Source of the DNA: Monocercomonoides exilis PA203 | Lineage: Eukaryota > Protista > Preaxostyla | NCBI GenBank assembly: GCA_001643675.2 | Contig: LSRY02000048.1 | Location: forward strand, 310,001-374,000 | Length of the DNA stretch: 64,000 nt | Direction: 5' to 3' | Shown here: positions 1 to 46,685 of the stretch, piece by piece | Layout: the number at the start of each line of letters is the position of its first letter | Position numbering within the stretch: the first letter of the stretch is position 1 | The notes under the pieces: model-generated | Seen by the model: only the letters and a program-made list of their open reading frames with translations | The model's database searches: none | Told to the model about the DNA's origin: nothing | Translations under genes and position numbers: made by a program

Positions 1-3000
1 ACGAAACAGCTTCAACAGCTTCGCGGAAGGGCTTTCCCAATTTGGAATGGTAAAGGAAGTGCATTAAGCACCCTTCATGATCATCGCAGGATAAATCTCG
101 TATTTTTTCAAAAATTTCTTTTGCATGACGGCTTTTTGTAGCGCGTGGACGAGTGTAATATGGATGGCAATAGATTTCGTTTTCCATATTTTTGCTTATG
201 GTTTCAAAAAAGTGTGATAAAACAATAAAGAAAGCTTGTATCTGTCAATGATGCTGTTGTAAGAGAAAAAAAAAATATCTTTTTTGAGTACAAAAACTTA
301 CTCTTTATTTTTCCTTTTCTTCTCCATCCGTAACAATCCAGTCTTTTCGAACTTTTCTTAAGATTTCCTTCAGTCACGTTGATCCTCCAGTTCCAGCTTA
401 AGCTCCAGTTGAAATTAATCATTTGCTGCACTATTCCCTTCTCACATATCTTCTGCTGCTTCATATTATTCGCTTCAGATGAAATAGAGAAGGATAACAA
501 TGAAAGAGAAGAAGAAGATATAATGCTGGATAAGCATTCGTTTAAAGAGAAGATGTTGCAGTAATTGACAGATATGATAGTTACAGCAATTCCCCCAAAC
601 TGAGAGCAAGAAAGGCAGATAAAAGAGAAGAGTCAGAAAAAGGAAAGGAAAAGAGATTAAAAGAGAGCATGATTGCTGAAGTGCCTGGTACAAAGAAGAG
701 TTGCTGTTAAGAAGCTCAAATTCTTCAAACAACATCATATCGCCTTTTGAAGAACAGGCAACCAGAAGAAGCGGATGCAGAATGAGCAGAAGAGGTACAG
801 GAAGGGCTTTTCAATACGATGAATCATTTGCGAACACGAAAGGCAAATTTGAACGAACAAGAAAAATGAAGAATTCTGGGATAATCCAAGGCACAGAATT
901 TCGATTTAAGCTTACGGCTTTTTTGATGAGAAGCAGAAGTTATCAACTTGAACACGATAACAATGCCATTAGAAAAAATTTCCTCTTTAGTCAAATTGCC
1001 TTTCTGTCTAATTCCTGGACAGGAATCTCGAACAAAGAAATAATCCCTTCTCCTCTCTTCGGTCGAGAACAAATGTCAATCAGCAGCTGAGACTGAAGAG
1101 CATTACAAAAGCGGATATTGCCATCTGCAACGAACGTGAAGTGCACGTCTCGATAGATACGCAAAGATCGGATGATAAAGTTCGTGATGCATCGTGCTCT
1201 CTTCTTCAGCTGCAAAAATAGGATGTGTCAATGTGTATTGTGTGTTCTGTGCTTATTTTGAAGGCTGGGAAGATGAAAAAATGAGTCGTGTGGCTGTATT
1301 GTTGACGGAAGCGCAGAATATAAAGAAGATGAATCCTTATTCACTCCGAAATTTGTATGAAAGAGCAGTTTTGTCTGTTTGAAGAAGTGAGCCAGCTACT
1401 GTGTAAAATGATGCATGAGTCGAAGGGAGGAATTTCGTTAAATTCTGTAAATCAAGCAAATCAAATCTATTTGGTTCATCATTGTCCTTCTCTCCTTTTT
1501 TGTCCGTCTCGTTCTCTTCAGAAAGAAGAAGCTATTGCCCTTTCCCAGAAAACAATGCATAGGCTGTGTCGTGTTCATTGTTGCTGTCTTCTGCTATCCT
1601 CATCTACTGTTGTTCCTCAATTTCCTGTTCAGCTTCCTCCAATTATGCAAGCATCTTCATTGCTGTCTATTTAATTTCATTCTTTCTCATTTTCTCCTCT
1701 CCTCCATCGTCTTCTTATTCATATGCTTCTTCAGATGTTAACAAGAGATCAAAAGCTGTTTTTAACAAAGCTGTTGCCTAAGTGCTGCAACACAACTAAT
1801 CCTTCAGCAGATGCTGTTTCAAAAAGAGGTGTAAAGCTTTTCGATTCAATTGCCACATCTCTTTTTTACATTCCATTTGTGATTGGACATAAGAATATGT
1901 GCTTTGGGACTTTGGTGGACGAGCACACATTTATCGATAACTGAGACGGTTTGGTAGAAAAAGAGGGAATAACAAGCTGTGAATAACCAGCTGTATAACG
2001 CACAACCTCGAAAGAGAAGAAGCCATTCTGCTTTTTCTCATTCTTTGTTTCCGTCAGGTTTAGCGTATACTGTCTCTACTCCCTTTCCACTTCCTCCTTC
2101 GAGCTTTGAAATGCAAACGTTGAATCAAAAATGAGGACGTTGGGCTGCATAGACTTTTTCGCAGAGTTAAACGAAAGGTGGATATTCGACTCTAGAGGCA
2201 GCTGAGGCTTTTCAACACAGTGTTCGTTGCTCCTCCAACCGACTGTGAAAACGAGCCGCAAGTTTGAAGGGATGATCGCATTCACCATATCACAATCGCC
2301 TGTCAGTGGGTGAGATGGGGCGTATGCATTTTCAAAGTTGATCCCATCGTTGTTGTTTGATATAACTCTCTACTTCCGCAGTTGTAACAGACAAGCTGTC
2401 TCTCACTCTATTCCAGATAAGTACAGAGTGAGAGTTGAAGAGCTGAAAAGTAAAGTTGAAAGCCATCTACCCTGCCACCACCTTCCACACATTCGCCACA
2501 CAGCTGGTATCAATTGTGATGAGTTTGCAGAAGATGGTGCTTTTGACGATGAATTCGATGCATGTTTAGTCGAATATGTCACAACGGACGGAGAAGATGA
2601 TGGAGCGCCACACGAACAGCCGCTTGCTTTGCATCACGATCACATTATTTTTCATTTTAAGTATATTCTTTACCGAAACCAGGTGCTTTGACTTCTTGAC
2701 TCCTTTCTATTTCTTTTTCTTTTTCTCTTTTCCTTCTCTTCTAACATTCATCTTGTTTCCGTCTTCCATTTTTCCCTGAATAAGATGCATTCGAAGAATT
2801 AACAGAATTGTTTCTGCTGTTGTATTCCTGCTCCAGTTCTTCTTTCTTCTTCTTCTTCTTCTTCTTCTTCTTTTTACTTTTTTTTTTTTTTTTTTGCTTC
2901 ATCAAAGTGTTAAAGCATCGTTATTGGAGAAATGAACAACTGTGACGCTTCTTCGAATGAAGACACCATCTATTCACACATCTGCTACAGGATGCCAACA

Positions 3001-4849
3001 TTCTCGCTGTTATATCAAAAAAGAAAGAAACCGGATAATCCCTATCCAATCTGGCTGACCTTTTCAATTCTTCAAGAGAGTTGAGCATGCTTAGGTTCCA
3101 TAGCAGAATCCTTCCTCCAAATTCAGCTTTGTCTAAAAGACACATCTTCCTCATCAATTTTATTCACAACACGCATCTCTTGTGAGCGGGGAGGAGAGCT
3201 TAACGAGAGAGCCTGTTGAAGATGAAAAAGGCATAGATTGTTATGAACTCTTTGCATGAATAGCAGTACATTTTGGTTTTGTTTTTGAAGTTCTTTTCAT
3301 ATCATCGTCTCTGGCAATAGTTGCATTGGCTGCTCTCATTTTCTCCATTTGCTTGTTTGATTAACCAAATCATTTCGAGCATTTCAATTGGTAGGATCTT
3401 CGCAATGTAGTTATTAGAGGTATAATCAGGAACTATTCCTCTTCAGCATTGAACAATGTGGTGATTGCTTTAATATGGACATGCATTGAAAAATTTTCAT
3501 CAGTTGCACAATCATCAAGACGAGGGCACAAGCTGCTTTCAAATGAGAAAGTTGAGGAAGATAATGATTGCCATGCTGGAGTAGAGAAGTGAGGGGAGTT
3601 GCGAGATAAATGTCAGCGAGATGATTAAGAAAAAGAAAAAGAAAATAATGATGAAGTTTAATGAAAGTGAGATAAAACAGATGATGATAAGAAAAAGAAG
3701 GCAGTGTCATAAGAGAGAAGAGGTTGATTTCTAAAAAAAATAATGAGAAAATTTAAAAGAACAACAATTATAAATAAAAATAAAACAAAATGTTTTCATA
3801 TTGTTGAAAGAATTCAAAGACAATAAAGATAATTATAATGATATTTCATATATAATTTAATAAATCATACTAAAAGCATTTTAATAAAAATTGCAAGTTG
3901 GGAAAGTTGGAGCGCAAGCACTGAGAAGAGGGTCCAGAACAGTGAATACGATAGAGACGAGGCTGAAGAGGCGGACGAAGAATGACAAGAGCAAAAAGAT
4001 ATACACAGAAACTTTGTCTTCTGCAGATCAGATTGAGTGAACGATGAAGAAGAGGACGAGGTGGCGTATGAGAGCAGATGAAAGAAAGGTGCGTTCTATG
4101 GAGAGAAGGTCCGGGGTGGATAGATTCCTGGAGAAAGAGAAGTTAAAAAAAAGAATGTTAATTGTTTTAAAATTAAAAAGGTAGATCGTATTTATATATT
4201 TGAAAGGATCATAAAGAATATGAGTAGACAAACATCAAAATTCTTGTCACTTTCAATTCAAAACAAATAAATAAAAAAATACATACCACCTAATACAACA
4301 CGGTTGCCGATGAGAATTCATTGTTGCTCATGTCTGGTTATTCTGTGTGATTGTCCAATTCTCACAAAAATCTTGCTGTTCTCTGGAACAAAATGGCTCT
4401 AATTTGCCAAGAAGAAACAGAAGATTGCGAATAGAAGCTGTATTGTTCATCCCACATTCCTCCTCATGTTCCCCTCCTCTGCTTGCATTGTTGTTGTTGT
4501 TGCCTTTCCTGCTATTTGCAGAATATCTTGATTAACTTTTATCATCACTTGCATAAGGATTTCTATTGCCATCAAAATTGCTATTGCTATTCTCGGTGCC
4601 AAAAGCAGAGATCTGAGAATAGAGCGAGTCTGCTGAGCGGATTATCTCAATAGCTCAAAATAAGGAGGCAACTTCGTTTGCAAGAAGGATGAGATGCGCA
4701 ATGAGACGAGTGCGGAGCGAGGCTACAACTGAAACATGATCTGAAAAGCAGAGCAGAGCAAGAAAGAGAGATTCAAGAGTTTCAGCGGTACCGCTGCTGA
4801 GTGGATGTCGAAGAAGATGGCCTGTCGCAGGAAGGGGAGAGAAGAAGAA

Positions 4850-4922: not shown

Positions 4923-6906
4923 GAGACTTTGGTTGGAGCCTCGCATTATGCTTGCCAAACAACAACAACAAAGAAGCTGATGATGGAGCAGACCAATGTG
5001 TGGTGGGCGTGAAAGATTTGCTTGATAGAGTCACTTTGAACTATTTTGAAAAGATCGTCTCCAGCTGGTGCCTCTTAATTTGAATGAATAATTGCCTTTT
5101 CGACCGAAGCGAAATTAACTGAAAGGAGATAAAAATGAACCACATTGAAGAAGATCGATGGATCAGAAGAGGAGGAGGCTATAGAAGAAGATGAAGACGA
5201 TGACACTGTTGGAGACGACGATGATGATTATGCAAGAGAAGGAGTGGAAATGATGTCACTGACTTTGGAATCTGCATCATCGCCCCAATGTCAAGAGACT
5301 TCCGCAGTAAGCCTGTTCTAAATGACGAAGAATACGAAATGGAATATTAACGAATAGACGAGAAAGATGTAGAAGAACACGAACTCCAACCAGAAAAGCT
5401 TCTGTTTTTCATCTCAAATTCCATCGAATTCAACGAAGACGATCTTTTCATCTCTCTTTCCTCCAACCCATTCATTTTCCGTATCGTTGCTCGCCAATTC
5501 TTATCCAATGCAGATTCCACCACACATGCCACTTTTCATTCTTTCAATATACTTTTCGTTATTTCATCTTCCAACTTCTGCAATGTCATCTTTTCTTACA
5601 TATCTGAAGAAAGCTATTATCTCCACTGGCTTCGGATTACAGCAGTACTCTTTCTGAAAATATTCGTTTAACATATAATAAAGAAAAAAAAGGAGATGAA
5701 GAAAGACAAAAAAGCAAAACTGGTGGTTTTTCTTCTTTTCATTTCCTGAAAAAAAATATTGAATTCTGAATCTCCCATGGTTATCGCTTCGACTTTCAAT
5801 TTCCGTTTGAATGATTAATTTTTCTTTATTCAACAATAACTTATTCGAACAAAATATCGCTCATAAATACTAACCTTCAAATGTCACTCGGACAATTCGA
5901 TTATGTTTATTATCATATCATTCATTTTTGCAAATACAAATATTAATCTTTGTCGCTCATTTTTGATTCCTTTTCCAAATATTTCTTTTTATATTGAATT
6001 GTTTCTAAAACTCAAAATAAACATTTATTATGGAATGGTTTTCAATTCCTTTTTTTGTTTCATTGGACTATAAACATTATGACTAGAATGCAGAATAAGT
6101 TTGGAACAAAACATGGTTTTTTTCATAAATGAAAAAATTATGCCCCATATTTCAAAAATTGATCGCTCCCACAATATTTAACTTCAGAATTGGTTTTTTT
6201 TCAAAAAAAATATAAGATTAAAAACCAAAAATTCGATTCCAATCGTGTTTTATTTATTCTATTCAATCACGTTTTATTAATGTTTAATAATTTGTGAACA
6301 TTTCAACGACTACGTGAAGTTATCATATGCCTTTGTTTGTTCAGCACCCTTATAAAATCGTTATTTCAAATTGAAATATCTTTTCTCTCCTTTTTTGGTA
6401 GTTTATAATGACAAATCATAAGTTACAAATCAATGGATGAAATTTAAATAGACTTCTTCAATTCAAATCAATCCATTTAATTCAAATAAAGTTAGTTTAT
6501 TTAAAATGAAGTTGGAATATTCTAAATATAGCACGTTTATTCAAATTGACGCTGAAATCCATCTTGAAAATGTATTTAAAAAAATATATTTTATCTTTCT
6601 AAATCACTAATTGGTTCATTTGGTGTTGTTTTTTTAAGTATTTTTAACCCAATTTTTATAACAATTTTGATCTTTTAGTTTTTAGTTGGAAATATGACTA
6701 AATAACACCAAAATGAGCTTCAAAGACAAAAAAAAGAAAAATTTCGAGAGTTTAAGGTTTATTTCGCTAATATTTTTATGTTTGTTTTAGAAAACACAGA
6801 AGATACGATTTTCATTAGGATAAAAATGTTAAGAGGAAAAGTGAAATGCTCCGAACAGTTTCATTTTGTAAAACACAAATAACTGCAAAAGTGTACGAAA
6901 TGAAGC

Positions 6907-8419: not shown

Positions 8420-9070
8420 TGGTTCTCCTTGATTCTCTCCACAAACTCTCCGTGCGCTGTCGGACACCCGCCTTTCTCCTCATTCCCATCACCTCCCTTT
8501 CTCCTTCCATCTTCTTCTCCTTTTTATCCTCCCTCTTTGTCTCCCTCTTTGCATCCCCTTTCTCCTTCCTCTGCTTCTTCCCGCTCCTCCAGAGCCGCCA
8601 GCGCCATCGCTGCTCACGACAGAACCACATCTTCCATCTTCAGCCCCGCTGCCGATAACCCCTTTTCCACAATCTCTCTCACTTTTCACACTGCAACCCC
8701 TCGCTCCATCACTTCATCGTCCAGATTCACCACCACACGCCTCGACTGTTGTGATCGCCATATCTGTGGCGACGGGTCAAACAGATCGTAGATCGACCGG
8801 AACGCATTCACACATCCACTCCAAAGATCTGCTGATCACCAACTTCGTGCCCACCGACGCTGAAAGCGACGGAAGCTGAGCCACCAGCGGAACAGAAAGC
8901 ATCGCCGAAAGCGCCACATTGTACTCGCACACAACACCCACATACAGCACCCCCCGCCGAGCCACAACATATCCACGCAGCGTCTGCGGCGACAGCAGTA
9001 TGTGCTGTGCATACAATTCAGCCTCCTCAGGCACCACAATCCCCAGTTGTCTCTCCATGTTATCCATCGC
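8420..9070 (-). pseudogene. Decayed member of a second repeated family (AFxSIYDLFD..MEDVVL motif)
   Basis: Colinear nucleotide similarity to 32820-33280 (AGAACCACATCTTCCATC, AACAGATCGxAGATCGA, CTCAGGCACCACAAT). Contains stops and frameshifts. Confidence 0.6.
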
Positions 9071-10884
9071 AGCTGCTTACGTGTGTGACAATGCAACAGT
9101 CAAGGCATCTGAAGGGTCAATTGCAGGCTTCGATGAAGATAACGATGGCTTTTCATCCTGCAAAATTCTTCTCTTCTCTTATATGTTGCACAAACAGCTA
9201 TGAAGCAAACTAATATGCTGCTTCAGTTGAAGAAGAAGAAGAAGAATGAGATATTTGATTATGATCATCTCCAAAAGGCGCTACAACATTTATCTTCTTT
9301 GGAGAAACGTTTCAAATTTCTCAGAATTTCTCTGATAGGAAAGTGGGAATATCAGGGATGCAGATTAAAAATGAAATTTCTTTTAGTTTCTTTGTGCATT
9401 TTCTGTTGTTTCCATTTTAATTTTTGTTAAAAACTGAGTTTTCTGCAATTCGAGGAAAGAAGTCGATGTCCTTATCGAAATTGTCTTCTTCGAAGAATGT
9501 TTCGTCTCTTTTGGGGGAAGAATGAGATGTTTCAATTGTAATGAACATGTTGGCTCAATCTTCTCTTTCTTTTTCTTCAATTGATAATTCTTCTATTAAT
9601 ATCAATGATTCTCTTCTTTTTATTCCTGTTCCTTCTCTTCAATTTCTTTTCTTTCTTCATTTCTACAACATATAAATTTTCTTCTTCTTCTTCTTCTTCT
9701 TCTTCTTCTTCGCCTTTCTCTCATTTCTTTCCTTTCTTTCCTTTTTCTTTCGTTTTCATTTGTTTCCTACAAAGTTCCCATATCGCAACACATGTCTCCC
9801 TTGTCCTGCATCTGATCGAAGCATTCTTTTGCTTTTCTTACGCAACAGTTGGTGTCTTCCGCCAACAAACAATTGAATTCCCCGTCTCATTGCATTTGTA
9901 ACTTGGCGCGTGAAAGCACCTTCTCATTAAAAAAATGTCACTGCTTCAATGATCACATAAACTCTCCAGAAGATTAAAGAATGCAGTGACACTTCATTCG
10001 TCTTGTTGACGCCCAAGCCTCTGAGGAGCAGGGTGAACTCAACAGTCCACAAAATATGTTCGGTTGAAAACAGAATCTGATGAAATTTTCCATTCTTTAA
10101 AAATCATTTCTTATTGAAGCCGCAACACAAGATAAACATAGGCCAATCATTTTTCAAAATGCCATCCAAATTTGTTTGTCCTTCCTTTTTCACAGAAGTC
10201 CATCTTTTCATCTTCATTCAATAAAATGTATTCTGAATTTGTTTTCACCTCTTGCATCCAATAAAATTTCCGAAAATCATGTATCTTGCGTAACTTCCTT
10301 TATTTCCCAATGGATATATAATAATCAGCTCCATTCTCATCGTATTGCTCCACAAAGCGGGGATTGGCCATTTCAACAATAATTCGGATTCCTGCACTTT
10401 GGAAAGGATACAGACGGAAATATCTTTGCAATCAATAGAACAATATAAAATACATACATTCAGATTTTTCCATTCAAAATGAAAATCGTTATTATCCCTT
10501 GGACAACGAATCACATTAATTCATCAGATAGAATTTCAGAATTATTTCGTTTCCACCATTTCCAGTTGCCATCATTGGAAATAATGCTTCCAATTCTGTA
10601 AAAAATGTTTATTAATTGAACTCTCATTTTGTTAATGAGTATTCCTTTTGAAAAAAACTTTGATCAAAACATCCATAACAACAAACAGAAAGAACAAAGC
10701 GTTCTTTTTCTTTGAAATTATAAGTCGAAAATGTTATCGAAAGATGGAAGAGTTTGAATGAATTTATTTTTTTTTTGCTTTTGTGAGTTTTCATTTTTCA
10801 TCTGTTTTCTTCAATCCAATCATTTGAGCTTTCTTTGTGAATATCAAAATCACATTGCTTTCTTCATTCAGTAAAAAAAAGAAT

Positions 10885-11474: not shown

Positions 11475-12141
11475 GTATGAAAACTTCTTTTCCAATTGTG
11501 ATACTAATATCCCCCCTCCCCTCTTCAATATTTATATAGGGTGCAAATTTTAACTTGACCTCAAAATTTTATCTCAACCCTATTTTTTTGAAACTTATTT
11601 TTGCTTTTTTGATTTGTAAAAAGGCTTAAAATAAAAACAAAATAAATCGACTTCTTGATATTTTTGTTTTTCATAACTATGTGGAAAAAAAATTTGAAAT
11701 TTTTATATTCAAAAAATTATTTAAAATTTTTATTATTTTAGGACCCAGATCAAAGACTTGCTGGCTGTGAAGCCAATATTTCATACTGAACGTTTTAAGC
11801 CACAGCATCAGCATTCCACATTCCAATATTAATCCTCTGCGACTTGTGACATTTTTTGAAACAAAAAGTTAAAATGACCGACTTAATAAAACATTTTTGT
11901 CACTCAAATCTCATCCTATGAAAAAGCAAAAAAAATATGGAAAATAAATAATTAAATAATTAATGCAAAATGTTTATTTTAATGTTATTGGATCTTTTTT
12001 TTATTTGCTTTTTCGATGTTGTTGAAATAAAAATGATCATTATAAAAGTGATGGTTTATTGACAAGATCAGTCAGTTATGGAAATTTGATGACAATTTTT
12101 TCCAGTGGAGAGTCTGGGCAACAGAAAAATTTATTATTTAA

Positions 12142-12276
12142 ATGGATCCTGAGCTATTGAACAGTTTACCACCTGAACTTCAATTATCCCTGAACGATCT
12201 TTCAATTGTATGTGGTTTATATCGCATTTAATTGTTAAACAGAATTATTCTATACATTTTGAAGAAAAAAGCATAT
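12142..12276 (+). pseudogene. Displaced 5' end of the hAT transposase (exon 1, 35-nt intron, start of exon 2)
   Basis: ATG at 12142 gives MDPELLNSLPPELQLSLNDLSI, followed by intron GTATGT...AAACAG (12208-12242) and NYSIHFEEKSI. This joins in frame to YCKKCYELQKIGCG at 17804 once 12277-17801 and one AT are removed. Confidence 0.72.
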
Positions 12277-12983
12277 GGGTAATTCTTTATGAAAAGTCGC
12301 AAACGTTTAACTGATCTGAAAAGAAGATCAAAAATGATCAAAAAATGTTGATCATTCCGTTACCATCATATATTGCTGAGTATTATTCTTATCAGTTTTG
12401 CTACCCTATCTCCGAATATTTCGTTTCAATAAAACAGATTTCATATAATATTTTCTCTGTCAAATCATATCAATGTTATTAAATATTGTTTTTCTTGTTT
12501 TTTGTAGCAACTTAATATTTTGTTCATATTTCTTTGTTTTCATTTCAACTGTTCATATAAACGTTTTATTTTTTTGAATTGAGGCTCCACATTAATTATT
12601 TTCCTATGATAAATAACAGATAGATTTTAACTTGTTTTAATTTGATTATTTTGAAAAGAAATTATTAAATAGGAAATTTTCATCTATTCTTTCCTCATTG
12701 AAATTAAAAGAAATACAAAAAGTTGTTAATATTGAGCAATTGTTAATGTTATTAAAAATAAATGAAGAATAACATGTCATATCTCAAAATTAAATGAACT
12801 TTTATAAAAATTCAAAAAAGAAATGGTATCTCATGTTTTGAATCAAATCATGAATCATATCTTAAATAGTTTTCAACTTTTCATTTTCTTTTTTGTTTAT
12901 CTTTTTCTTCTCATTTCAATTCCCTTCCAAAAGAAATTCTTTTCCTTTTTTTCCATCAAATTAGAATAGATGAGATTTCGGAA

Positions 12984-15900
12984 ATGATTGACGTTTATAA
13001 TTTGATCATGGACTTTGTGTTTGTGACTCGAAAGCAGCTGCAATTTTGTGTGATGAGTTGCATCAAAAAGCTTCTTGCGGGAGCGGAAGCGATTCAGTTG
13101 TCTCTTTTCTCAGCTCCTTTTTACTTCGTCTTCTTCGAGTGGAGTAGCACGCAGATCTTCTTTACATTCAGGAGTCCAATAAAAGAAGAGAAGAAGGTGA
13201 CAGAGGATGTACGGATATTAGCATCTTCGTCTGTACGTGCATTTTACCCTTCGGATGCCTCGAAGATGGAGGATTCATAAACGCTTGAAGTGGCATGGTT
13301 GAATGAAATCGTTAGGCGGCTGAGGATAGTTGTGAAGAAAGCAGCTGAGCTGCAAAAGCTGCATGGTTATGAAGCTGTCACTGCTCCTGTCGCTGCTGAT
13401 GTTGCACACGCTGCAAGGTTTCAATATTGGCTTGCTGTGCTCTGCTGTACAGAACATGCAATGTCCGTTCAATGTTTGATGCTTTTCATTCTTCTTGTAG
13501 CTTTACTCCCGTCACTTGAGGATTTACCGAGAAAGAAGTCGTCGAAGAAGCTGTTATTAACAGCGGTAGATGTGGATGCGTTCCTGCCAATCTGCAATCC
13601 GCCTGATCCATCGCTGGCTTCATCGGCCATTGAATGGCTGGCGAACAGAAAGAAGAAGACGAGGCATGCAGAGTGATGAAGCTGGTCAACAAAATGAGGA
13701 GGGGGGATAGTTGCAGTGAATGAAGTGGGAGAGATTGCGAAGAAGGCGCTGGAGGTGGTGGGGCAGAGGGGCTGATGATGGAAGATGTGGTTCTGTCGCC
13801 TGCAGCGATAGTGCTGAATTTGCTGGAAGAAAGAAAAGAAGAAGAAGAAGTTGGAAAAGGACAAGGAGGCGAAGCGGATGAGCGGGCTGACAGAGCAGAT
13901 GAAGGAGAAGGCCAATATCATCTGGATGGATCAGAGGAAGATTCCGGAGCTGAGCGAGAAGCACAACTCAGAGGTGATGCAGGTGAAGCAGGTGAAGGAG
14001 CAGCTGGTGACGATGAAGAAGTGGGCGGAACTGATTTATATGAGGATTGAGAAGCGAAGAATCGATGGACGCAGCATGGCGTGGTGGTGAGTTGGTACAG
14101 CAAGGGGTCGATGCAGGAAATTGAAGTTTTCCTTGCTACGTCTTCTTTGTTAATGTCTGTGTGTGGACAAATAATTTTGTCTTATGCTTCGTTGATTCCG
14201 CTGTTGGGCTGTGTAAAAAGCACAAAGAGAAGTTTGCAGCGAGCATCGGGGATGTCAGCGCTGTGTTGGTTGAGCCAGACCCGAGCGATAAGGTGGTTGT
14301 TGTGAAAGTGGGGAGTGGGGAAAGTGTTGTGGGCGAAGCAAACAGCTGTGGGGAAGGAGGAGGCGGAGGAGGCGGAAGCGAGGGAACGAGGTCATTGATC
14401 AGGAGAGATCAGAGAAGAACAGCTCTGGGGCCAATGGTGGTATTGGTGTCGGTGGTGGTGAAGGAGGAGTGGATGCAAGTGTGCCGTAGAAGATGAACAA
14501 GGTGGAAAAGGAAACGAAGATGCTGATTGCGCTGTTGAATGTGCACATAAAGACTAAATGCGAGCAGAAGGCGCTGTTCAATAAGGTGATAGAAAAGGAG
14601 CAGATGTCGCTTGGGCAAAAGAAGCAGGAGAAGAGAATATTTAAGGTTCGTATGAAGAGGTTGCTTAATGAACTCCTGGTTAGGTTAAGAAGCTGGAAGA
14701 GCGTGAGGTGCAAGTGGACTTTGGAGGGAGCAGGTTAGGAAGGGCAGAGGAGAAAGGTGCGAGAGAGATGGATGGAGAAAGGAGGAGGATGAGGAGGAGG
14801 AACAGAAGTTATGGCTGAGAATACGAGGAGGCAGAGGAGGTGGAAAAGGCAGAAGAAAAAGATGCAAGCGCGGTGAACAGGATTCCGCTGTTTCAGCACA
14901 ACGATCCGAAGAGAGGGAGCGGGATGATTGGATGAAAACGGTGGTTCCAACAGTGGTAAAGAAAGGATAAGGGAGTGCGAATGTTGTGTAGTGCACGTTC
15001 ATGCTTCTTGAGCAGACGACAGAAAGCAGAGACAGGGAAGAATCGGAGTGCTCTGTGACTTCTCTTTGTTGATTGAGGTCAGGGGTGTCTGGTGCAAAAG
15101 GGGTGCCTTTGCAGGCGGTGTCGATGGCGAGGGAGTGTTAGATGAGTGCAGTGTCTGGGTCGCTGGTACAGGAAACGTGTAAATCAGCACATGTGCTTCG
15201 GGTGCCACACTCGCGGAGGTCATCCGTGCAGATGAAGCGTTTGTTGAAGTTGCTGAAGATAGGTTTGCAGTCGTAGCTAATGTGGAAGCTGTCGAGGATC
15301 CGGGGGTGATGCGGAGACATTATTTCAGAAGATCTTTGAATGGGGGTGGGCGTTCAGAGGCAGGGGTTTGGGGAATTTGTGTGCATGTGGCTGGGGGAGA
15401 AGCAAGCGGTGCAGAAGAATAACTAGGCGGTGATGTGTGCGAGGATGTATGGGGAAGAACTGTTCCGGAAGGACTTTGCAGAGATGGAACTGTTTGAGGA
15501 ATTTGTGCGGAAAGAGTAAACTTGAGGTGAATTGGAGTTTTTCTGATAATTGAATGGTGTTAGAAGGGGTGTATAAGAAGAGATTAAAATGTCTTTTGGT
15601 TGTTTGAGGGGATACAGTTGGAGAAGATGTATGCATATGCCTCTGTGTTTATGGTGTTTCTACTGAATAACTTTATGGAAGAAGCAGCTTCCGGATGTTA
15701 GCGATGAAGCTGACAAGTTACAGCATTTAAAGCAGTCTTTGAATTATGTGATTGCGAAGGCGACAAGATGGTGTTGGTCAACTTGGAGTAGGAGTTTTAC
15801 ACAGTATCGAAGGTGATGTGGGAATGGTTTGTGATGAAGCTACATGTGTAGATTGTTCAGTTGGTGAAAGAGAAGAAAGAAGGGCGGTAGACGTTGTTCC

Positions 15901-16010
15901 ACATTGTGCGGCTGCTGGAAGGGATGGTGAGGCTGCAGCTGAGGAGGATGTGCAGTCGATGGTGGAGACAAAAGAAGGACAGATTGTGCTTGTGCAATTT
16001 AGTTAGAGAT
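12984..16010. pseudogene. Mosaic of decayed, GC-richer gene remnants inside the nested element
   Basis: Short frameshifted ORFs. The 13700-13850 segment (MEDVVLSPAA) is homologous to 8580-8720 and 32820-32930. Confidence 0.5.
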
Positions 16011-16175
16011 GTAGTTACACAAAAAATAGCATTGTCGATGGAGTAAAAGTCATATTTAACAATAATTCATCAACATCTGTTTCTTCATCGCTGCATAAAA
16101 CAAATACAGAATGGAAAGTGATGAAATTAAACAATGCGCTTCGATCATTGGGTTGATATTGGATATGATCAACCA

Positions 16176-17285
16176 TCAAATTTCCAAAACAATATTTTCA
16201 TCAGCGTTTTCTTCTCGTCGATACCTTTTTCTTTTTCTCTCTTTTCCTTCTTTCTTCAATGATATTTGATCATTTTTGGAGAATTTGAGAGAAGAAGGAG
16301 AATGAGAAGAAGGAGTTAGAAAAAGAAGAAGATGATGATGAAGAGGAAGAAGAAAAAGAGGAAGAAGAAGAGGAAGAAGAAGAGGAAGAAGAAAAAGAAG
16401 AGGAAGAAGAAGAGGAAGAGACGCCAAAAGAACAGAAGCTATTTGTGAATTCCTTGAGCAATTCTCGAATGAGGAGCTTCCAATGGAAATTGATCCTGAA
16501 GTTGAATCATTCATTGAAAAAATACTGCCATCATGCAATTTTACTCCATCTGTATCAATTCCATTGAACACAACTTTTTTGTTCCGATCAATCTCAAATA
16601 CATTTGATGTTGATTCAATCTGTTCCAATTTCGCATTTGTGATATTTAATACATCTCCATTTAGCAGAAATGAAGGCTTCTGGAATGAAAGCATTGATAT
16701 TGAGCAGTTGTCAACATGAAGAATTCCATTTTCGATGTTTAACAATGTTAAATTGAGAACAACATATTCAATGATTTCTGACTGGCTAACTGAAGAAAAT
16801 TCAACAAATGGAAGAGACGGCTGGCCATTTTCTCCGAGGATTAGAGAATCTCCAGAATACGAAAACGATTGGACAAAGGAAAACTTAACGCTTTCGATAC
16901 GAACATTCTCTGAGGTTGTGATTAGATTTCCAGAATCATATGTAATTGTAGAGTTCAGACGCACCAAAGCAGCTGAGGGAGATTGTAATGAGCGGATGGT
17001 CACATTCAAAGAACTGCATTCTCCATTGATGATAGTTTCTTCTGATATCAACAGCTGTGAGTACTGAGATGGAACAATGTGTTGGATTCCAACATTCAGC
17101 GATTGACAAGGCACATTGAACTCCCCACATTGTTTGCTGTCTCCGTGACTATCTGCAACAGAAGACAGAAATATTGCCTCGCTCTGGTATTTCATCACCC
17201 TCAGCAGAAGATCTTCTTCCCCCACATACGAATCTGTTGTGACTCCCCAGATCGCCATTTCTTTCATGTCAGGTTCTCTATTAGT
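16176..17285 (-). pseudogene. Internal fragment of a large beta-helix/pectin-lyase-like repeat protein family gene (cargo of the nested element)
   Basis: The 389-aa ORF has DSKQCGEFNVPCQSL and repeated S/N-rich beta-strand motifs (LHVDNCSIS, ISIGSSSFENCS). The first ~18 codons look intronic (ending ...TTCGCAG), and the C-terminus degenerates into a GAA microsatellite. Confidence 0.6.
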
Positions 17286-17803
17286 ACTGCGAATTTGCCA
17301 AGTTAAGAAAATGAATAATATTATTAGAATTATTAAATAAAACATTCAAATAAAAGCTGAATGAAAACCTTTTGATATGTATGTTTTTCATCTTTATCAA
17401 ACTTGTGGGAGTAATAAACGCATTTATTGAAATTCCAGGCACATTGTGTGCAATGAAATATTTCAATCAAATAAGAATTTTATCTATCAACGAATCTCAA
17501 TATTTTGATGAAATAAAATTGAAACAAACCTTGTCCATTTATGAATCAACAATTGCTAAGTGTTTCAATCAAGTGAAACTCTTTTTTATTGAAAAAATGA
17601 TATTTTAAATTTTGATCAAAAAATATGATACATAATTTTTTGAAAAAGAGTATTTCTTCTCATAAAGAAGTTTGTTATGAGCCTACAAACATCACTGTGA
17701 AAGTTTAATATTTTTATTTGTATTATGGTAACGGAGTGTTTTTAATTAACTTTCATGGGATTAATTTTTGATCCGTAGCGACTTTTCAAAAAGAATTACC
17801 CAT

Positions 17804-20620
17804 ATTGCAAAAAATGTTACGAATTGCAAAAGATTGGTTGTGGATTCGTTGCTTTGGAATATGTCAAAACAACTGAGAAAGGAAATGGTTTTAATTTTTT
17901 TCTGTTTTTAAATTTTAATTTTCCACCAATAGTTTACAGGCACCCTAAAGAATATGGAAAGTTCATAACAAAAATATCATTGGAAATATATAAAGATAAT
18001 TTGTGGATATCTTTCATTCCTATTCAGCAAGATGGAAGTGTCAAAAAAGATGGTCACAGATATCTTCTTTGTCCAAACAGTCGTAAAGGATTCAATTGTG
18101 GATTTTCTGGAAGAATGGGATATGTTTCTTTGGATTCGCACAAATGCACGATCACTTCGAATCAAAGTTTAGATCACTTAATGCAGAAAAAAAATAATGA
18201 TAAAGGCAAACCATCATCAACACAAATTCAAACATCAGAAAAGTTAATTCAGTTTTCAGATTTGTCAACTTCATTTGTTCAGTTTGTCAGTCATTGCAAC
18301 GTATCATTTCGTTCAGCATCTTCATCTGAATTGAATAACTTTTTGCAATTATTAATTCAAATTGCTCAGCAAAATCCCACTCTTCCTCCAAGAACAATAT
18401 TTCCACTGATAACTGAAAGAAAAATGTCCAACATGCTTTCAATAGAAAGGAAAAGAATACAATCAGAGAGAAATTCACACATTGAAAATGTTCCAGTTGG
18501 TGTCATGATTGACGGAGGAGCAATATCCGGTAAGAAATATACAGCTGTTTCTGTTGTCCCACTAACAATTTCTGGCAAACCAATATTTTGGAAATTATAT
18601 CCCGCTTGTTACTCATCAAAGGATTATGAAAACTTGGCCTTGAATATAATCCGCGAAATAACAATATGCAAATCGGAGGTGCACTGCTTTTGCAGCGATG
18701 GACTTCTTCCGCAAAGAAAAGCCTTGCAACAAATAAGAAACAGACTTTTTTTTGGATGAAGGTCCTCAACATTTATTCGCATTTGGTCCTTTTTTTATAT
18801 ACTGCATGAATCATTTAACTAATTTGATTATTGTGAAAATTTTTTCCAACAATCAAACACTGAAAACATTGAAGGAAACAATTGTTGAGTTTTCAAAAAG
18901 CGCTCATAATCCCAGAATTTATTCGATTTTGAAAACAAAATGTCCGACGTTCGTTGCAACAAGATGGCTTTGTTTATATCAAATTTGTCGTTTCATCAGA
19001 GTCAACAAAAAGATGATTTTGCAAGCTGAACTTCTTGATTCAAACACAGTCTCAGATATTATTAGAACAGAAATTTTGCTTCTTCCATTGCAGCAATTGC
19101 ACTTCTTTTTTGAGAATGAAACTTCAAAACTTGGAGGAGCATTTCCAGAACTACTGAAAGCTTTGGGAAGGTTTTTTGTCATTCTCAATCAACCAAGTTT
19201 TAAAGAACTTCAATATTCAATTTGTGTTTGTGATTTTTTGATTGAATTATTCAATTCGTTTTTGTCAGGACCAAGAGGCGACATGATAGCATTAGCGTAT
19301 GCGTTAACTCCAAATGGTTTGAACAATTTCAGAAAAGGTGAATTTGCATCGATATTTAATTTTGAACTAGCTTTGTTCAAATTCAATATTGAGGCAGAGC
19401 AAAATCAAATTGTCTCAAGTTCAAAGTCTAATCAAACAACCACTGAACCTTCAGATGATGTGTCCAAAGACAGTTCTCAATTTTCTAGATATTCCAATGT
19501 ATTTTCAACATCAACAGTTTTTGACCCTTTGAAACATAATGATGAGGAACAAGCATCTTCATCAACCGATAATTCATCTGCATGCAAAGAATCGCAATTT
19601 CCACAAGTTCATTTCTCTGATCCAACTTCAATTGATGAAAATCAAACATCAACTTCATTGTTTAATTCATTTGTTTCCGATCCCAAAGGCATTGAAACCC
19701 CATTGTCAATCACTTCTTTTCACTCAGCAATACGTTTCTCAGAAGGAATCCATTTGTCGCACAAAAATGGACTCGGCTTTGCAACCACATTTACGGAAGA
19801 AACTTCCAGTCATTCTTCAGAAGGCACAGTTTCAATCACAAACAAAAATGATGAGCTATTGGATAAATTATTGCGAATATTTGAATTAACATCTGAAGAT
19901 ATTAACAACAACGATGAAGCGAATGATTTTTTAATTTGTGAAGATTTCGAAGATCAGCTTGGATTGACCGATGCAGAATTGGAAGCAGAAAATGATGAAT
20001 TTTAATGTTTTCCAACTTCAAGTGAGAATTTAATGTGTTACTCCACAAGAAATACTGATAAAACAAGTTCAGATATGCATACAGAAAATGAAGAACATTG
20101 TTCATCCAGAATGGATATTGAAGATATCGAAGATATCGAAGAACCCACATCAAGTTCAAATGAGGAAATAGAGTTGGATGTTTACGAAATTGGATCAAAT
20201 GAACAAGTTACACGTAACAAAATGACAACTGAAGATGCTGTGAAGGAATAATCTTCGAATATTGAATCTGCTATAACATCTAATTGGAGTATGAGAATAA
20301 TATCTTCGTTCAATTCTTTCACAGAAAATATATTTTCCAAAGCAAATAAAATTCATATTGATGAATACAAGAAGATATTTTATGAATCACTATATCCAAC
20401 TGAAAAGGAAACTATTTACGTAAATCCTTTCACATATTACTCAATCATTGGTTCACGAAGCAAAATTCACACAATTTACGCAAACATTTGCATGTCTTTA
20501 ATTGCCAGTCCTTGCAGCGAAGCGCCTTGTGAGAGGGTTTTTTCTAAAATGAGAAGAATTGTTGGAGATCGGCGTCATTCTTAAAGTGAAGAAACATTGA
20601 ATACACTACTCCTTGTTTGA
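17804..20620 (+). pseudogene. hAT transposase main body, inactivated
   Basis: Motifs VGVMIDG (D1), CFCSDG (D2), YCMNHLTNL (CxxH), FVATRWL, and SEAPCERVFSKMRRIVGDRRHS (E, dimerisation region). Lesions: a frameshift in a T-run at ~18750 and in-frame TAA at 20003, 20249 and 20582. Final TGA at 20618-20620. Probable in-frame 45-nt intron at 17888-17932. Confidence 0.9.
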
Positions 20621-24727: not shown

Positions 24728-26193
24728 TCAGGAATAAATAAAATAATCAGAAATCTCTAATGATAAATTATGAAATCCTAAGTCAATGAAATCAATAATT
24801 TCTCGAAAGCTTGTGATGATGTCTTCATATCCTTCTTCTTCCAACTTTTCACAAAGCCTCTCCTTTGAAGCCTTTCTTTCCCTTTTCACAATTGCTCCAT
24901 TCGTCTTTTCTTTCAATCTTTTTGAAATTTCCATAAATATTCCTAAATAACACCACACAAAACTGTCTTCAAATGATAATCCCTGGATTTCCTCCATAAG
25001 CAGATCAAAGGCTCCTCCTTCCAGCAAAGCATCAACATTCACTGAAAGCATGGTTGCCATTGAATAAAAAAGAGAAATGCAATTATCGAATGTTCCTCCT
25101 TCATTCTCTCTTGCTGCTCGGCACAATTCAACAATGCTGCAAATCAGTCCAACAACATCTTCATTCCACAAATCAAACTCTCGAAACGGCTCTTTGATTG
25201 TGCAGATCCATCTCATTATTGCTTTTTGCTCTTTTTTGCGTTTCGTTACCTCTTCTTTCCTTTTCCAATCCACACATTTCGTCAGTTCTTTCAGTTCTCT
25301 TGCTGCTTCTCTCACAAAATGCGTTGCATCTACAATATTATCTTCCAAGTGTCTGTCGTTGAGTAATCTGTAAATTAAAAATTGCCAAGCCGACTGATAG
25401 GCAAGGCAGGAAAGGTTTCGATTATTCTGATGATATTGAATTATTTCTTTCATTTCTTCCAAATATAGCTTTTTTTCTATTTTCTGTAAAAAAAGCAAGA
25501 AAAATACAAAAAACATCAAAAAGAAAGAGGAAATGAGCACACATAATAGTCATCAATGCTACTCAAAGCAAATAAAGCTATTTCCACTTCTTTTCGTGCT
25601 TCTTCGCTTTCATTTTTGATCAAAGCTGCTTTCAAAAGGCTAGACAGACAAATCGAAAGCAATTCCTTACTAAAAGTATGATAACTGTGAAGCATTGTAC
25701 AGCATTTGCAAAGGTCAACCAGCAATCTTTCATTCTTTTCTTCTTTTTTCTCATTTTCAAAAATAATCATTTCGGCAAATCTTTTCCCCAATGAAGAATT
25801 TCCAAAATTTGAGTTGGATGAACGCAATGATATTTTACAAAAACCAATGTGCTTCAATAGCAGAATCATATTTCCAAAATTCATTTTCTTTTCATCAATC
25901 ATTTTCTGAATTTTTTCGAACTGCTCGATTTTTAATACTGATCTGAATTCATACTTATCCATTTCGTCCATAAATTCATTCATTTCTCCGATTTTCTTTC
26001 TCTGTTCAATTTCTGTGCAATCTTCCAGTTCATCAAGCAATTCTTCAAATAAAAAAATTAAGAAAAAAAGAATATCTAATCACCTGGAATTCGAATATAA
26101 CAACGGATGCAAACCAGTGAACTTTTTTGTGTTATAAGTCTCCTGCACTTTTTCAAATTTATTTCATTCAAAATACAATATCATTTTTATCAT
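24728..26193 (-). CDS. Expanded unknown family copy 2 (alpha-helical, ~450 aa; exon 1 possibly disrupted)
   Basis: ORFs 25516-26040 and 24728-25540 are joined by a short intron. Motifs EVEIALFALS, LAYQSAWQFL, KLEEEGYED. The putative exon 1 contains a stop. Confidence 0.75.
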
Positions 26194-28916: not shown

Positions 28917-30374
28917 TCAAATATTCACAATATAATCAGAAATATGCAACGATAATGAATGATTATAATTTCCTTTAAAAAACTCTAAAGTTTCATGAAA
29001 GCTTGTGATGGTATCTTCATATCCTTCTTCTTCTAACTTTTCAAAAATCTCTTTTTTTGTTGCTTTTCTTTTCGCTTCCTCTTTTTCTTCTTTCTTCTTT
29101 CCATGAAATTTCCATGAAATTATCAAAAAAAATTTCAATCCATTAAAAGTCATTCCGTCATCCAACATTGGCTGCTGCATCCCCTCCAAAACAGCATTAG
29201 CAGCTCCTCCTTTTAACAAGTCTTCAACTTTCACAACTCTTCTTTCTGCTGCCATTTTCAATATATGAATGCATCGACTGCTTATTTTTTCGTAATTGTT
29301 CCTTGATATTTGATATAGCTGAACAATGCTGCTGAAAAGCCCAACAAATTCTTTATTCTCCAATTTGCATTTGAGGAAATAAGAACCCAATGTTTCGAGC
29401 CATCTCATCAATGGAAATTCTTCTTTCGCCTTTTCTTTGTTCATTTCCTCTTCATTTTTTCTGTTCCATTCCATATTTCTTGAAAGCTCCTCCAATTCTC
29501 TTGCTGTTTCTCTTCCAAAATGAAGCTCATTCGCAATTATATCTTCCAAACTTTTATCAATGTTCAATCTGCAAATCAAAAATTCCCAAGCACACTGATA
29601 GGCGAGTCGTGAAAGATTCCGAATCTCCTGATGATATTGGATAATCTCTTTGATTTCATTCAAATACAGTTCTTTTTCTATTTTCTAATAAAAAAAAGAA
29701 GAAGAAAATCAACAATGCCAAAAATGATACAGATATGTTCATACTACAAATCGACTAATGCTACTCAAAGCCTGCAAAGCCATTACTACTTCCTTTTGGA
29801 CTTCCTCGCTTTCTTCTTTCTTCAACGCAACTTTCATAAGACATGGTATACAAATTGGAAGCAATTCATCTGAAAGGAAGTTTAACCTCAGCAAAGTGAA
29901 GCATTCGCAGAGATATATCAGAAGCTTTTCGTTTTTTCCTTCTTTTTTCTTTTCTTCTTCAATTATCATCTTCTCGAATATTCCGTTAAATTGAGATTCT
30001 TCAAATTCATAAATCTGCATGAGTTTTAATGTCCTGCTATATCCAAACTGTTCCAACAACAGAATGGCATTCTCTAAAGTCAGTTTCTTTTCTTCAATCA
30101 TTTCGTGAATTTTGTTGAACATTTCTTCGTTGAAAATAGAAAGCAATTCATCAGCATTCATTCCATCAATCACTTCATTCATTTCTCCGATTTTCTGTTC
30201 CTGCTCAGCGTCAGTGAATTGTTCCAACTGTGAAAATTTCTCTAAAAAAAGTGAAAAATCAAAAGAGAAAAAAGAAGCATTTGTTAATTCAACCAACAAT
30301 TTCTTATTAAACGGTGCAAACCCAGAAATATTTGCTTTTTTGAAGGTGACTGTGAAATCGCAAAATGAATTCAA
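28917..30374 (-). CDS. Expanded unknown family copy 3 (start uncertain)
   Basis: ORFs 29739-30374 and 28917-29663. Motifs EVVMALQALS, LAYQCAWEFL, LLKGGA, KLEEEGYED. Confidence 0.78.
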
Positions 30375-32684: not shown

Positions 32685-33600
32685 TTACTCTTCCTCTTCT
32701 TCTTCCTCTTCTTCCTCTTCATCCTCTTCTTCTTTTTCTTCCTCTTCTTCCTCTTCTTCCTCTTCTTCCTCTTCTTCCTCTTCTTCCTCTTCTTCCTCTT
32801 GTTTCACTTTTTCTTTTCGTTTTTCAATCACCATCAGCTCAATAGCTAAAGGCAACAGAACCACATCTTCCATCCTCGACCCCCTTTCCTCCAATTCCTT
32901 CCCCACAATATCTCCAACTTCACACATCGTCACTTCGTCTTCAAACTTCGTCATTAAATATTTCTTCTGATACGATAACAACATCTTCATCGACTGGTCG
33001 AACAGATCGAAGATCGAAGGAAATGCTGTTCACATCCTCCACCTCAAATATCCTCTTCCTTTTTAGACTGCGCTCCCACAGAGGATGCATGAGACGAAAG
33101 CAGCGCTCAGCGGAACTGAAAGGAACATAGAAAATTCCACATATCTCATCAAAAAATTCAATCATAGCGTCTGAGGGAACAGAAGCATCAACAGAAACAG
33201 CGAAATACACTGTTCATTCACCACAGCTGCCTCAGGCACCACAATTTGCAGCAGTCTCTCAATATCATCCATTACCGTTCATGATATGTTTGTTGCAGCT
33301 CTGATTGAAGTATGCGAAGAACTGATTTCAGGCTCAGATGACGATGACGATGACGATGATGATGACTGTTCATCCTCTGCCATCTTCTCCACTCCACTTC
33401 GGAGTTGCATGAATAGCGATGAAACAGACGAAGAAGACGAAAAAGGATGGGGTGTTGAGAGAAATGGAAAACTGCTGCACTTTGATGACAACAAGAATGT
33501 TTTTAAAATACTCCGTCTCTTCTGTTGGCAGCTCCATCAGAAGATCAAGCTCAACATAAGCATTTGGATCACAAATGCCAATTGGCTGTGAGTTTTCGCA
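32685..33600 (-). pseudogene. Decayed member of the MEDVVL family ending in a poly-Glu tract
   Basis: AFPSIFDLFDQSMKMLL..VGDIVGKELEERGSRMEDVVLLPLA followed by poly-E. Homologous to 8580-9070 and 13700-13850. Confidence 0.6.
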
Positions 33601-35281: not shown

Positions 35282-36785
35282 TCAAATATTCACAAAATAA
35301 TCAGAAATATTCAATGATAATTCTTCATAATATTCTTTGTAACGAAAATCAATTGTTTCATAAAAGCTTGCGATAATATCTTCGTATCCTTCTTCTTCCA
35401 AATTGTCGAATATCTCCCTTTTAGTTGATTTTCTTTTCGCTTCTTCCATTTTATCTTTCCCCTTTTCTTTCAATCGACTTGAAATCATTTGAAAAAATTT
35501 CAAGATTTCACTAGTAATTTCGTCATCCAATGTTGATCGGAAATTCTCCTCCATAATAGCATCAATTGCCTCACCTTTCAACAAATCATCAACTTTCACA
35601 GCTTCATTTTCTGCTGCATCATTAAAGGAATAAATGCATTTTCTGTAAATCTCTCCATAATTATCTCTTGATGATCTTAACAACTTTGTAATGCTACCAA
35701 TGAGCCCTGCAAATTCTTCATTCCACAATTTGCATTTGTGAAAAATATCCATAATTATATCGAACCATCTCAAGATTATGAACACTTCTTTCACTTCTTT
35801 TCCTCTTCTTTTTTCTTCTTTCTCTTTCTTCCAATTCACATTTCTTGCCAACTCTTCCAGTTCCTTTGTTGCCTCTATGATAATATGCAGTTCATTCACA
35901 ATCACGTTATTCAATTTTTCATCTTCGAGAAATCTGCAGATCAAAAACCCCCAAGCAGACTGATAGGCAAGGTGAGTAAGATTGTGATGTTCTTGGTGAT
36001 TCTGGATTATGTCTTTGAACTCTTTCAAATACACTTCCTCTGGCATTATCTAATGAAAAAAGAAATAAAATCCAGTCAATAAAACAAAATTTGACAAAAA
36101 TCACATACACGATATCTAAAGCCGTTCAATGCAAGCAAAGCCATTTCCACTTCCTTTTGAGTCTCCTTGCTTTCATCTTTCTTCAAAGCAATTTTTAGAA
36201 GATATGGTACGCAAATTGATAGCAATTCCGATGATGTTGAATAATTGATTAAGACATAGCATTCGCAAACATCAACAAAAAGCTTTTCATCCTTTTCTTC
36301 TTTTTTCTTTTCTTCTTCAACAATCATTATCTTCTCAAATCTTTTGCGCAACGAAGAATTTTCAAAAGAATAACGCCATAAGCCTTTCAACTTAATCCAA
36401 TACCCAATATGTTTCATCAGCAAAATAGCTCTGTTCAAAGTCAATTTCTTTTCTTCAATCATTTTATTAATTTTGTCGAAATTCTTTTTTGTAAATGTTG
36501 AATAAAATTCTTTTTCATTCATTTCCTCAATCATAACGTTCATTTCATCGATTTTCTTTCTCTGTTCATTCCCGTCGCGATCTTCCAGTTCATCAAGCAA
36601 TTCTCCAAAAAAAAAAAAATAAAATAAATATTCAAAGCATTGAAAATTTTATCAACAGAAAAAATTAACAAACTGTTGAACTTTTCAATAAGCTCTTTTT
36701 TGAATTCTTCCTCTTCTTCGTCATCGCAATCTTCTTCTCCTTCCTTTTCTTCTTCAACACCACAGACCGAACTAACTTCGTTCAT
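35282..36785 (-). CDS. Expanded unknown family copy 4, apparently intact, 3 exons
   Basis: Exons 36785-36674, 36602-36109 and 36049-35282 join in frame with GT-AG introns. Acidic exon 1; motifs EVEMALLAL, LAYQSAWGFL, LEEEGYED. Confidence 0.87.
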
Positions 36786-45975: not shown

Positions 45976-46652
45976 CTTTCACACAAAATAACACAAAATC
46001 TCGCAATTACTCATAAAAAAAGAAAAGAAAAAAAAAAAAAAAAAAAAAAAGAAAGAAAGAAAGAAAGAAAAATTTCCCCCTTCCCCAACACATACCCATG
46101 AACATGATAATAATGAAGAAAGCCTTCGACCACTGCGAAAACGGCGCCTGATCATCGTCCAAGATCGAAGCACACCCTGTCGACAGTCCCACATTCCCAT
46201 ACGCCGAGCACAAGTCAAACACCACTGTAAACCCGCTGAACACTTGCTCAATGATCTTCTTGTTCTCTATCCAAAACACCGCAAACACTGAAATCACCAG
46301 CCACCACAGGTCGCGCGCTTCGGTTGTGTCTTGCTGCGCTCTGAAGAACTTCGCGCAGAAACTCAAGGCAATCTTCCATTTCGCCAGGTTTGTCCGCTTT
46401 TTCGGCCTTTGCAGGGCTAATTTGGATTCGGATGGGTTGATGGAGCCGATGGAAGGGGCGATATGAGCATCAGATTCGACGGAAATGGCACTGGAATCAG
46501 AAGAAGTTGAAGAAGAGGAAGAGAAAGAAGAAGATGAGAATGAAGATGAATAAGAAGAAGAAGAAGAAGAAGATGATGATGATGATGATGAAGGATCCTG
46601 TCTTCGCGCATACAGAACTGGTTCAGAAAGAAGAGAAGATGAAGAGGAAGAA

Positions 46653-46685
<33 letters not shown>

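Follow-up and report, generated by a model that had tools for sequence, protein, structure and literature searches.

The 64,000-nt stretch of the Monocercomonoides exilis PA203 genome analyzed here (C45:310001-374000, hereafter the window) carries at 12277-17801 a 5,525-bp DNA transposon that is non-autonomous, moves by cut and paste and interrupts a hAT-like transposase gene. Unlabeled coordinates are positions in the window, and genome-wide searches covered 101 contigs with 82,301,135 bases. A first-pass annotation had described the element as a Pack-type member of the ISL2EU branch with 2-bp AT duplications and privately captured host gene fragments. The element family is real and that first reading was correct in part. 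Its boundaries, a 4-bp target-site duplication (TSD), its membership in a family, a cargo common to that family and the recent mobility of sister copies can each be read directly from the genome.

Element boundaries

The two 24-bp terminal inverted repeats (TIRs) agree at 23 of 24 positions and are flanked on both sides by ATAT, as first reported (Table 1). No comparable pair was found in 100 shuffles, with 0 expected by chance. Global alignment of the two ends gave 19/20 identities in the first block, followed by weaker, gapped similarity. An imperfect continuation of the repeats for ~90 bp had been noted; the inverted similarity reaches ~95 bp and includes another conserved block, CTCCGTTACCAT, at base ~80-95.

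Table 1. Features of the element, of the gene that it interrupts and of a similarly built terminus elsewhere in the genome
Feature	Position	Strand	Remarks
Left TSD copy, ATAT	12273-12276	.	Paralogous empty sites hold one 4-bp ATAT/ATTT
Left TIR, GGGTAATTCTTTATGAAAAGTCGC	12277-12300	+	23/24 match to right TIR
Left subterminal region	12301-12371	+	GATC/TGATCA motifs and block CATTCCGTTACCAT; imperfect mirror at right end
Two open frames, same reading frame, one stop between	12870-13673 (12870-13277, 13281-13673)	+	Decayed coding segment
G+C-rich (45-52%), purine-skewed core	13250-16100	+	Mosaic of decayed coding segments
389-aa open frame	16176-17345	-	Hydrophobic leader, captured fragment and low-complexity microsatellite-derived tail
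(AGA)n-like microsatellite	16290-16419	.	Length varies between copies
835-bp host-ORF-like segment	16431-17266	-	80.4% nt identity to internal part of giant ORFs
Right subterminal region	17708-17777	-	Imperfect inverted similarity to left end
Right TIR	17778-17801	-	23/24 match to left TIR
Right TSD copy, ATAT	17802-17805	.	
Interrupted hAT-like transposase gene	17806-20584, continuing from 12142-12272	+	Open frame, four paralogs
DDE_Tnp_4-associated terminus, ATAT followed by GGGTAAAAATAAAAAAGTCTAAC	L065:5028-5058 (C45:35032-35058) and 7 other places		

Target-site duplication

The hAT-like sequence flanking the element is repeated in four other copies (C17, C41, C21 and C20), all of them without the insertion, which bears out the proposal of a bounded TIR element nested inside a hAT-like transposase gene. 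These copies match the window at 91-92% over 12000-12276 and at 95-96% over 17802-18300, with a 4-base overlap between the matches. Read directly, the empty sites are ATAT (C41), ATTT (C21 and C20) and ATATT (C17), each between a conserved GC and T(G/A)CAA/AACTAA. The site lengths are therefore 4, 4, 4 and 5 bases, whereas a 2-bp duplication requires 6. The claim that removal of the element plus 2 bp (AT) restores the original site is contradicted by these lengths, and the empty site predicted from it, ...GCATATATTGCA..., was not found. Under a 4-bp model the hAT-like frame also stays open across the site, reading ...LKKKAYCKKCYELQKIGCG in the window and ...LKKKAFYKKCYELQKIGCG in C21 and C20, so that the frame argument for 2 bp is not decisive. 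The phase-0 intron on which the 2-bp deletion depended has an acceptor, AAACAG, that is not conserved in C21 and C20.

Other family members tell the same. Identical 4-bp flanks were found in 12 complete long copies (ATAT in nine; ATGT, AAAT and ATTT in one each), and perfect 4-bp TSDs in 16 of 24 MITEs (miniature inverted-repeat transposons) with the same TIRs, including two of ATTT and one each of AGTT, ACTT and TAAT. Eight members other than the window copy thus have non-palindromic duplications (ATGT, AAAT, ATTT in three, AGTT, ACTT and TAAT), which cannot be read as 2-bp duplications. The TSD is 4 bp, namely ATAT or, more loosely, ANNT. ISL2EU elements are defined by 5'-AT-3' TSDs and PIF/Harbinger elements by 3-bp TWA TSDs (PMC4482050). 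Neither is found here, and with a 4-bp TSD the ISL2EU assignment through an AT duplication fails.

GGG...CCC elements were also seen to adjoin each other, with one ATAT common between the CCC of one and the GGG of the next (L037:89-104 and 5560-5575). This abutting arrangement was seen again in L020, L024, L005 and L030 near base 1500. The ATAT target is recreated at each insertion of such abutting elements.

Long copies and MITEs

With up to two mismatches, the TIR 24-mer has 945 matches genome-wide (490 forward and 455 reverse), and a reversed-pattern control has 0. Many further paired copies exist, as the first-pass annotation had anticipated, and one pair of TIR matches, C27:31324 (+) and C27:42182 (-), is separated by 10.9 kb; 100 of the 945 matches were listed individually, and the copy counts that follow are lower bounds. 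At 24 of 26 distinct sampled TIR loci the element measures 239-241 bp, from which most TIR matches are MITEs, ~450 of them. MITEs and the 5.5-kb element have only ~35 bp of each end in common. Eight sampled TIR matches that appeared to be single turned out, without exception, to be 240-bp MITEs of the ordinary kind whose partner end had diverged. The MITEs (e.g. L001:1501-1739) align to their own reverse complement at ~72% over the full length and are long imperfect palindromes. One MITE adjoins a reverse-transcriptase-like open frame (L026:2156-3022, minus strand).

Searching the genome with the full-length element (5,525 bp) retrieved ~20 long relatives of 5.3-7.7 kb. Thirteen complete copies (5,306-7,753 bp) align collinearly over their entire length, mostly at 71-89% identity, and almost all positions are occupied. 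In this alignment the window copy is 78-84% identical overall to the others; mean identity of the 12 other complete copies to it is 94% in the first 100 bp, at the TIR end, and falls to 67% in the lowest 100-bp stretch. No other copy exceeds 84% identity to the window copy, which therefore belongs to an old lineage. By comparison, L039 (C58, TSD ATGT) and L040 (C43, TSD ATAT) are 98.2% identical over 5,766 bp and lie in unrelated flanks, so the family has moved recently. Two further copies, L046 (C62:213075-221027) and L047 (C62:197061-204418), lie ~16 kb apart with identical flanks, an indication of segmental duplication; their (AGA)n array is expanded to ~2.4 kb.

Because the interior is collinear in 13 copies, the cargo is a family trait and was not acquired by the window copy itself; the same alignment rules out that the cargo consists of later nested insertions. 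The proposal of a single Pack-type ISL2EU element that duplicated 2 bp of AT and captured host fragments privately is thereby left with hardly any credibility. The ATAT flanks are compatible with AT, and an in-silico 2-bp deletion yields a tidy spliced frame. Set against this, the empty sites had already refuted the proposal, the TSDs ATGT, AAAT, ATTT, AGTT, ACTT and TAAT are impossible as 2-bp duplications, and the interior is common to at least 13 complete copies, ~20 in all, contrary to private capture.

The surface-protein-like fragment

Pfam scans returned no family above noise for the interior ORFs (both strands), for sister copies or for the giant host ORF. Specifically, no transposase family was found in the tested ORFs of the interior on either strand (spliced gene models were not searched, and Sola-type transposases are not in Pfam), nor was any DDE_Tnp_4, THAP or YqaJ ORF. 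The earlier statement that the interior lacks a transposase and contains fragments from two or more multicopy gene families stands to this extent: one piece derives from the giant ORF family on C52, and other segments are related to long ORFs on C25 and C41.

The 835-bp segment is an internal piece of giant C52 open frames, which exceed 1112 and 1666 aa. Its host paralogs number at least 40 places in the genome. These giant ORFs belong to no Pfam family; their GGAI-type repeats presumably recall those of polymorphic surface proteins. All copies of the fragment except that of the window contain one to eight stops. Variation between element copies is nevertheless concentrated at third codon positions, with a ratio of up to 2.2. 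Pairwise between element subfamilies, the ratio of nonsynonymous to synonymous divergence (dN/dS) is ~0.34, with dS of 0.45-0.9. The corresponding dN/dS is 0.30 between the two host paralogs and 0.25-0.42 between host and element. Synonymous divergence of the fragment lies far above that of flanking element DNA. For example, the window copy and L039 are 87% identical over bases 1-3672 and 75.7% identical in the fragment.

Ongoing selection on all copies as the source of the third-codon variation is ruled out by the stops and by indels that are not in threes. The divergence of the fragment would be explained by recurrent exchange with host paralogs or by selection that acted on master copies in the past. 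In the L049 subfamily the fragment is 76-78% identical to several loci that are unmatched by other parts of the element and 72-75% identical to most other element subfamilies, with only the C62 copies (L046 and L047) closer at 81-82%. Capture of the surface-protein piece on one occasion only is compatible with the fragment tree. That the fragment and the giant surface-protein family exchange sequence repeatedly, by gene conversion or by template switching in gap repair, is suggested by the resemblance of the fragment's dS (0.45-0.9) and dN/dS (~0.34) to the host-paralog values; nearly all fragment copies are now broken, which runs counter to this hint, and we regard such exchange as unlikely. 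If it did take place, a large surface-protein family would have its variation shuffled in and out by the transposon family, which would serve as a mobile reservoir. With codons taken into account, the divergence of the captured piece offers a testable lead on exchange between transposons and a large host gene family.

Plus-strand segments and core

Across copies, the plus-strand frame at 12870-13673 contains few stops and its share of synonymous changes is raised, and the stop between its two open parts is read through in the L035 copy. Places within open frames as long as 1553 aa (C25:2070579) match it at 33-40% aa identity. Pfam yielded no family for it, and an ESM Atlas look-up of 13281-13673 returned nothing.

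Within the core, multiples of 3 account for 23 of 67 distinct indels (34%), which indicates that the copies decay neutrally. Genuine genes of the window reach 55-59% G+C, which makes the composition of the core that of coding DNA in this genome. The segment at 14161-14496 has a counterpart at C41:11260, within a 1391-aa open frame (78% aa identity), and its homologs occupy at least 134 places in the genome. Among 1.8 billion representative proteins it has 17 relatives; the four top relatives that were looked up are M. exilis hypothetical proteins. Related element families hold collinear versions of the core. These homolog families may be cellular genes or the cargo of other transposons, and the data are suggestive of a host-gene origin of the core.

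The core could alternatively be the remains of the element's own gene or genes in a decayed autonomous lineage, with the homologs as transposon copies and the surface-protein piece as the only true cargo. The homologs of the core segments are mostly broken, a profile typical of transposon genes; the only relatives among the representative proteins are a few M. exilis hypothetical proteins, and collinear core versions recur in related element families. Against this, neither a transposase domain nor Sola2-like catalytic motifs were found in the tested ORFs and sequences, and the long open frames (1391 and 1553 aa) in which the best core homologs lie did not come up as element copies in the whole-element DNA search. 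Moreover, every copy is broken, yet the L039/L040 pair moved recently, which points to help in trans. We consider this origin of the core quite unlikely.

Core homologs cluster near contig ends (C41:9.5-12 kb, C42:802-805 kb of 811 kb, C35:3140, C67:307, C15:27980 and C36:38339), which suggests a subtelomeric multicopy family, one member of which has the 1391-aa open frame. The window itself contains two diverged remnants, at 8565-9184 (minus strand) and at 32807-32922, that correspond collinearly to element bases ~900-1574 (71% nt; 33% aa, E 0.012) and lie inside a 49% G+C island.

The interrupted gene and other genes of the window

The hAT-like label of the interrupted element rests on two observations. 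A Dimer_Tnp_hAT match at 20291-20584 is weak (E 9e-4; 19.4 bits, under the Pfam cut-off of 21.4), and we take the SEAPCERVFS motif at the C-terminus of the ORF to be that of a hAT transposase. A sequence search of PDB returned no relative of this ORF.

Elsewhere in the window, five paralogous open frames of 255-274 aa (24731-25549, 28920-29684, 35285-36049, 52920-53729 and 54521-55342) have the motif EIKEIIQYHQE..NL..LAYQCAWEF in common and form a local multigene family. A TrkH-like ORF (cation transporter, E 2e-34) occupies 46010-49009 on the minus strand and includes a stretch of 59% G+C, and an IFT140/IFT172-like ORF of 1284 aa lies at 59630-63481 on the plus strand (51-58% G+C). Genuine genes of the window are much richer in G+C than its repeats.

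Source of the transposase

We propose that the element belongs to a non-autonomous family of ~20 copies with a fixed, decaying cargo and a 4-bp TSD, mobilized in trans. We put the probability of this reading at roughly 0.7, a figure that leaves aside the kind of transposase. Help in trans is inferred from copies that are all broken and a pair that has moved recently. Under this proposal, a transposase supplied in trans would bind the TIRs and the subterminal GATC-rich motifs, excise the element and re-insert it at ATAT (more loosely ANNT), with cuts staggered by 4 bp that would produce the 4-bp duplication. The cargo would date from the origin of the family or earlier and have been copied along with it since, as a fixed mosaic of the 835-bp giant surface-protein-like piece and fragments of other lineage-specific multicopy ORF families. 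The window copy, as a member of an old and isolated lineage, would have landed in the 5' coding region of the hAT-like transposase gene and broken it.

Among candidate sources, a Sola2-type transposase appears the likeliest, with about an even chance. Sola2 elements have 4-bp AT-rich TSDs of the form AWWT (ATAT, AAAT and ATTT) and TIRs of 12-22 bp (PMC3627910). This TSD is the published hallmark of the group, and it is what the empty sites, the 12 long copies and 16 of 24 MITEs display, with ATAT dominant.

Several observations weigh against the proposed reading with a Sola2-type source. Among the 100 TIR matches listed of 945, no autonomous element with the element's TIRs was found, and USP-domain matches were not within 25 kb of the exact TIR matches listed. 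Pfam has no Sola model, so that the core could contain a Sola2 gene in decay despite the null Pfam result; the two Sola2 catalytic motifs were looked for in a crude scan of the sequences analyzed, with a negative outcome. In addition, a DDE_Tnp_4 lineage with similarly built termini adjoins ATAT, and the "host" families related to the core segments may themselves be the cargo of transposons. Near 43.8 kb of C45, two 10-kb pieces (L065 and L066) contain no matching end pair for a giant element. They hold other family members and a Tc1/mariner gene, and the TSDs of the candidate ends are mismatched (AAAT vs ATAT). A left end at C80:165870, 14.5 kb from a USP match, was dismissed because its TIR variant is unique in the genome. 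The Tc1/mariner transposase gene is intact-looking (L065:127-1398, minus strand; DDE_3, E 7e-21).

The DDE_Tnp_4 lineage could itself mobilize the family, as a new group of Harbinger/ISL2EU-type elements (PHIS) that makes 4-bp ANNT duplications; the first-pass annotation would then have been right on the kind of transposase and wrong on the length of the duplication. DDE_Tnp_4 genes occur at no fewer than 147 places, many of them intact (300-590 aa). Of eight genome-wide pattern matches to the terminus GGGTAAAAATAAAAAAGTCTAAC, all have ATAT as their flank and seven are located exactly 225 bp past a DDE_Tnp_4 domain. This terminus and the element TIR (GGGTAATTCTTTTTGAAAAGTCGC type) both have GGGTAA...AAAAGTC. 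GGG or GG termini and AT-rich targets are usual in PHIS, whose groups have TSDs of different length (0, 2 or 3 bp, and perhaps 5 bp in NuwaII; PMC4482050). No published PHIS group, however, has a 4-bp TSD, and a TSD of 4 bp, AWWT, is precisely that of Sola2. Over their first 11 bases, GGGTAAAAATAAAAAAGTCTAAC and the element TIR agree at only 6, and the DDE_Tnp_4 lineage shows no subterminal homology with the MITEs or the 5.5-kb family. Only one end of its elements was seen. We therefore hold mobilization by this lineage to be possible but doubtful, and keep a Sola2-type transposase as the better candidate. DDE_Tnp_4 genes are often arranged head to tail, 2.3-2.4 kb apart (e.g. C22:115713-125592, C62:227603-235244 and C1:535383-544812).

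Significance

Repeats of the M. exilis genome are mostly unclassified, and "unclassified repeat" makes up ~35% of it (PMC8767320). GGG...CCC/ATAT elements, of which we found no description for M. exilis in the literature searched, are part of this share, as hundreds of MITEs and as 5-8-kb cargo-carrying families. The 4-bp duplication redirects their classification away from ISL2EU. It also supplies an exact rule (ANNT, 4 bp) for annotating such elements and for spotting gene models that are transposon cargo.

Comparison with known systems

Sola2 elements have been described from Dictyostelium fasciculatum (DFa-1/2/3) and Polysphondylium pallidum (PPa-1/4/5), among others (Bao and Jurka 2013, PMC3627910). 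They resemble the M. exilis element in their 4-bp AT-rich TSDs, in their short TIRs (12-22 bp, vs 24 bp here) and in having members with a common end region but a differing or lost transposase region, as well as large elements with extra genes. They differ in that no Sola2 transposase is tied to the M. exilis TIRs, in their termini (GAG/GAA or GTT in the dictyostelid families, GGGTAA in M. exilis) and in their cargo, which is a Fanzor gene in Sola2 and dead gene fragments here.

ISL2EU and PIF/Harbinger elements likewise have TIRs that start with GG(G), AT-rich targets and MITE derivatives in abundance, and are set apart by TSDs of 2-bp AT and 3-bp TWA, respectively, vs 4 bp. Tourist- and Stowaway-like MITEs are comparable to the internally palindromic ~240-bp sister elements, which number ~450 and have the same TIRs and TSD; the 5.5-kb element departs from these in its length and in the ~35 bp per end to which its likeness with the sister MITEs is confined.

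Pack-MULE and Pack-CACTA elements are gene-capturing, non-autonomous elements of plants. Like them, the M. exilis element is bounded by TIRs and TSDs, lacks a recognizable transposase (within the reach of Pfam, in which Sola-type transposases are missing) and contains internal gene fragments whose parents persist elsewhere, together with a chimeric 389-aa ORF. Derivation from persisting non-transposon genes holds for the 835-bp piece and is only suggestive for the core segments. The element differs in its superfamily and in its host, a metamonad protist. One cargo is fixed in a ~20-copy family and in related families instead of many independent captures, and 13 collinear copies argue against capture by an individual element. 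Furthermore, a dN/dS of ~0.34 between M. exilis copies suggests exchange with host paralogs or selection. The element is Pack-like at the level of the family, which carries a cargo and has MITE sisters, and individual capture fails.

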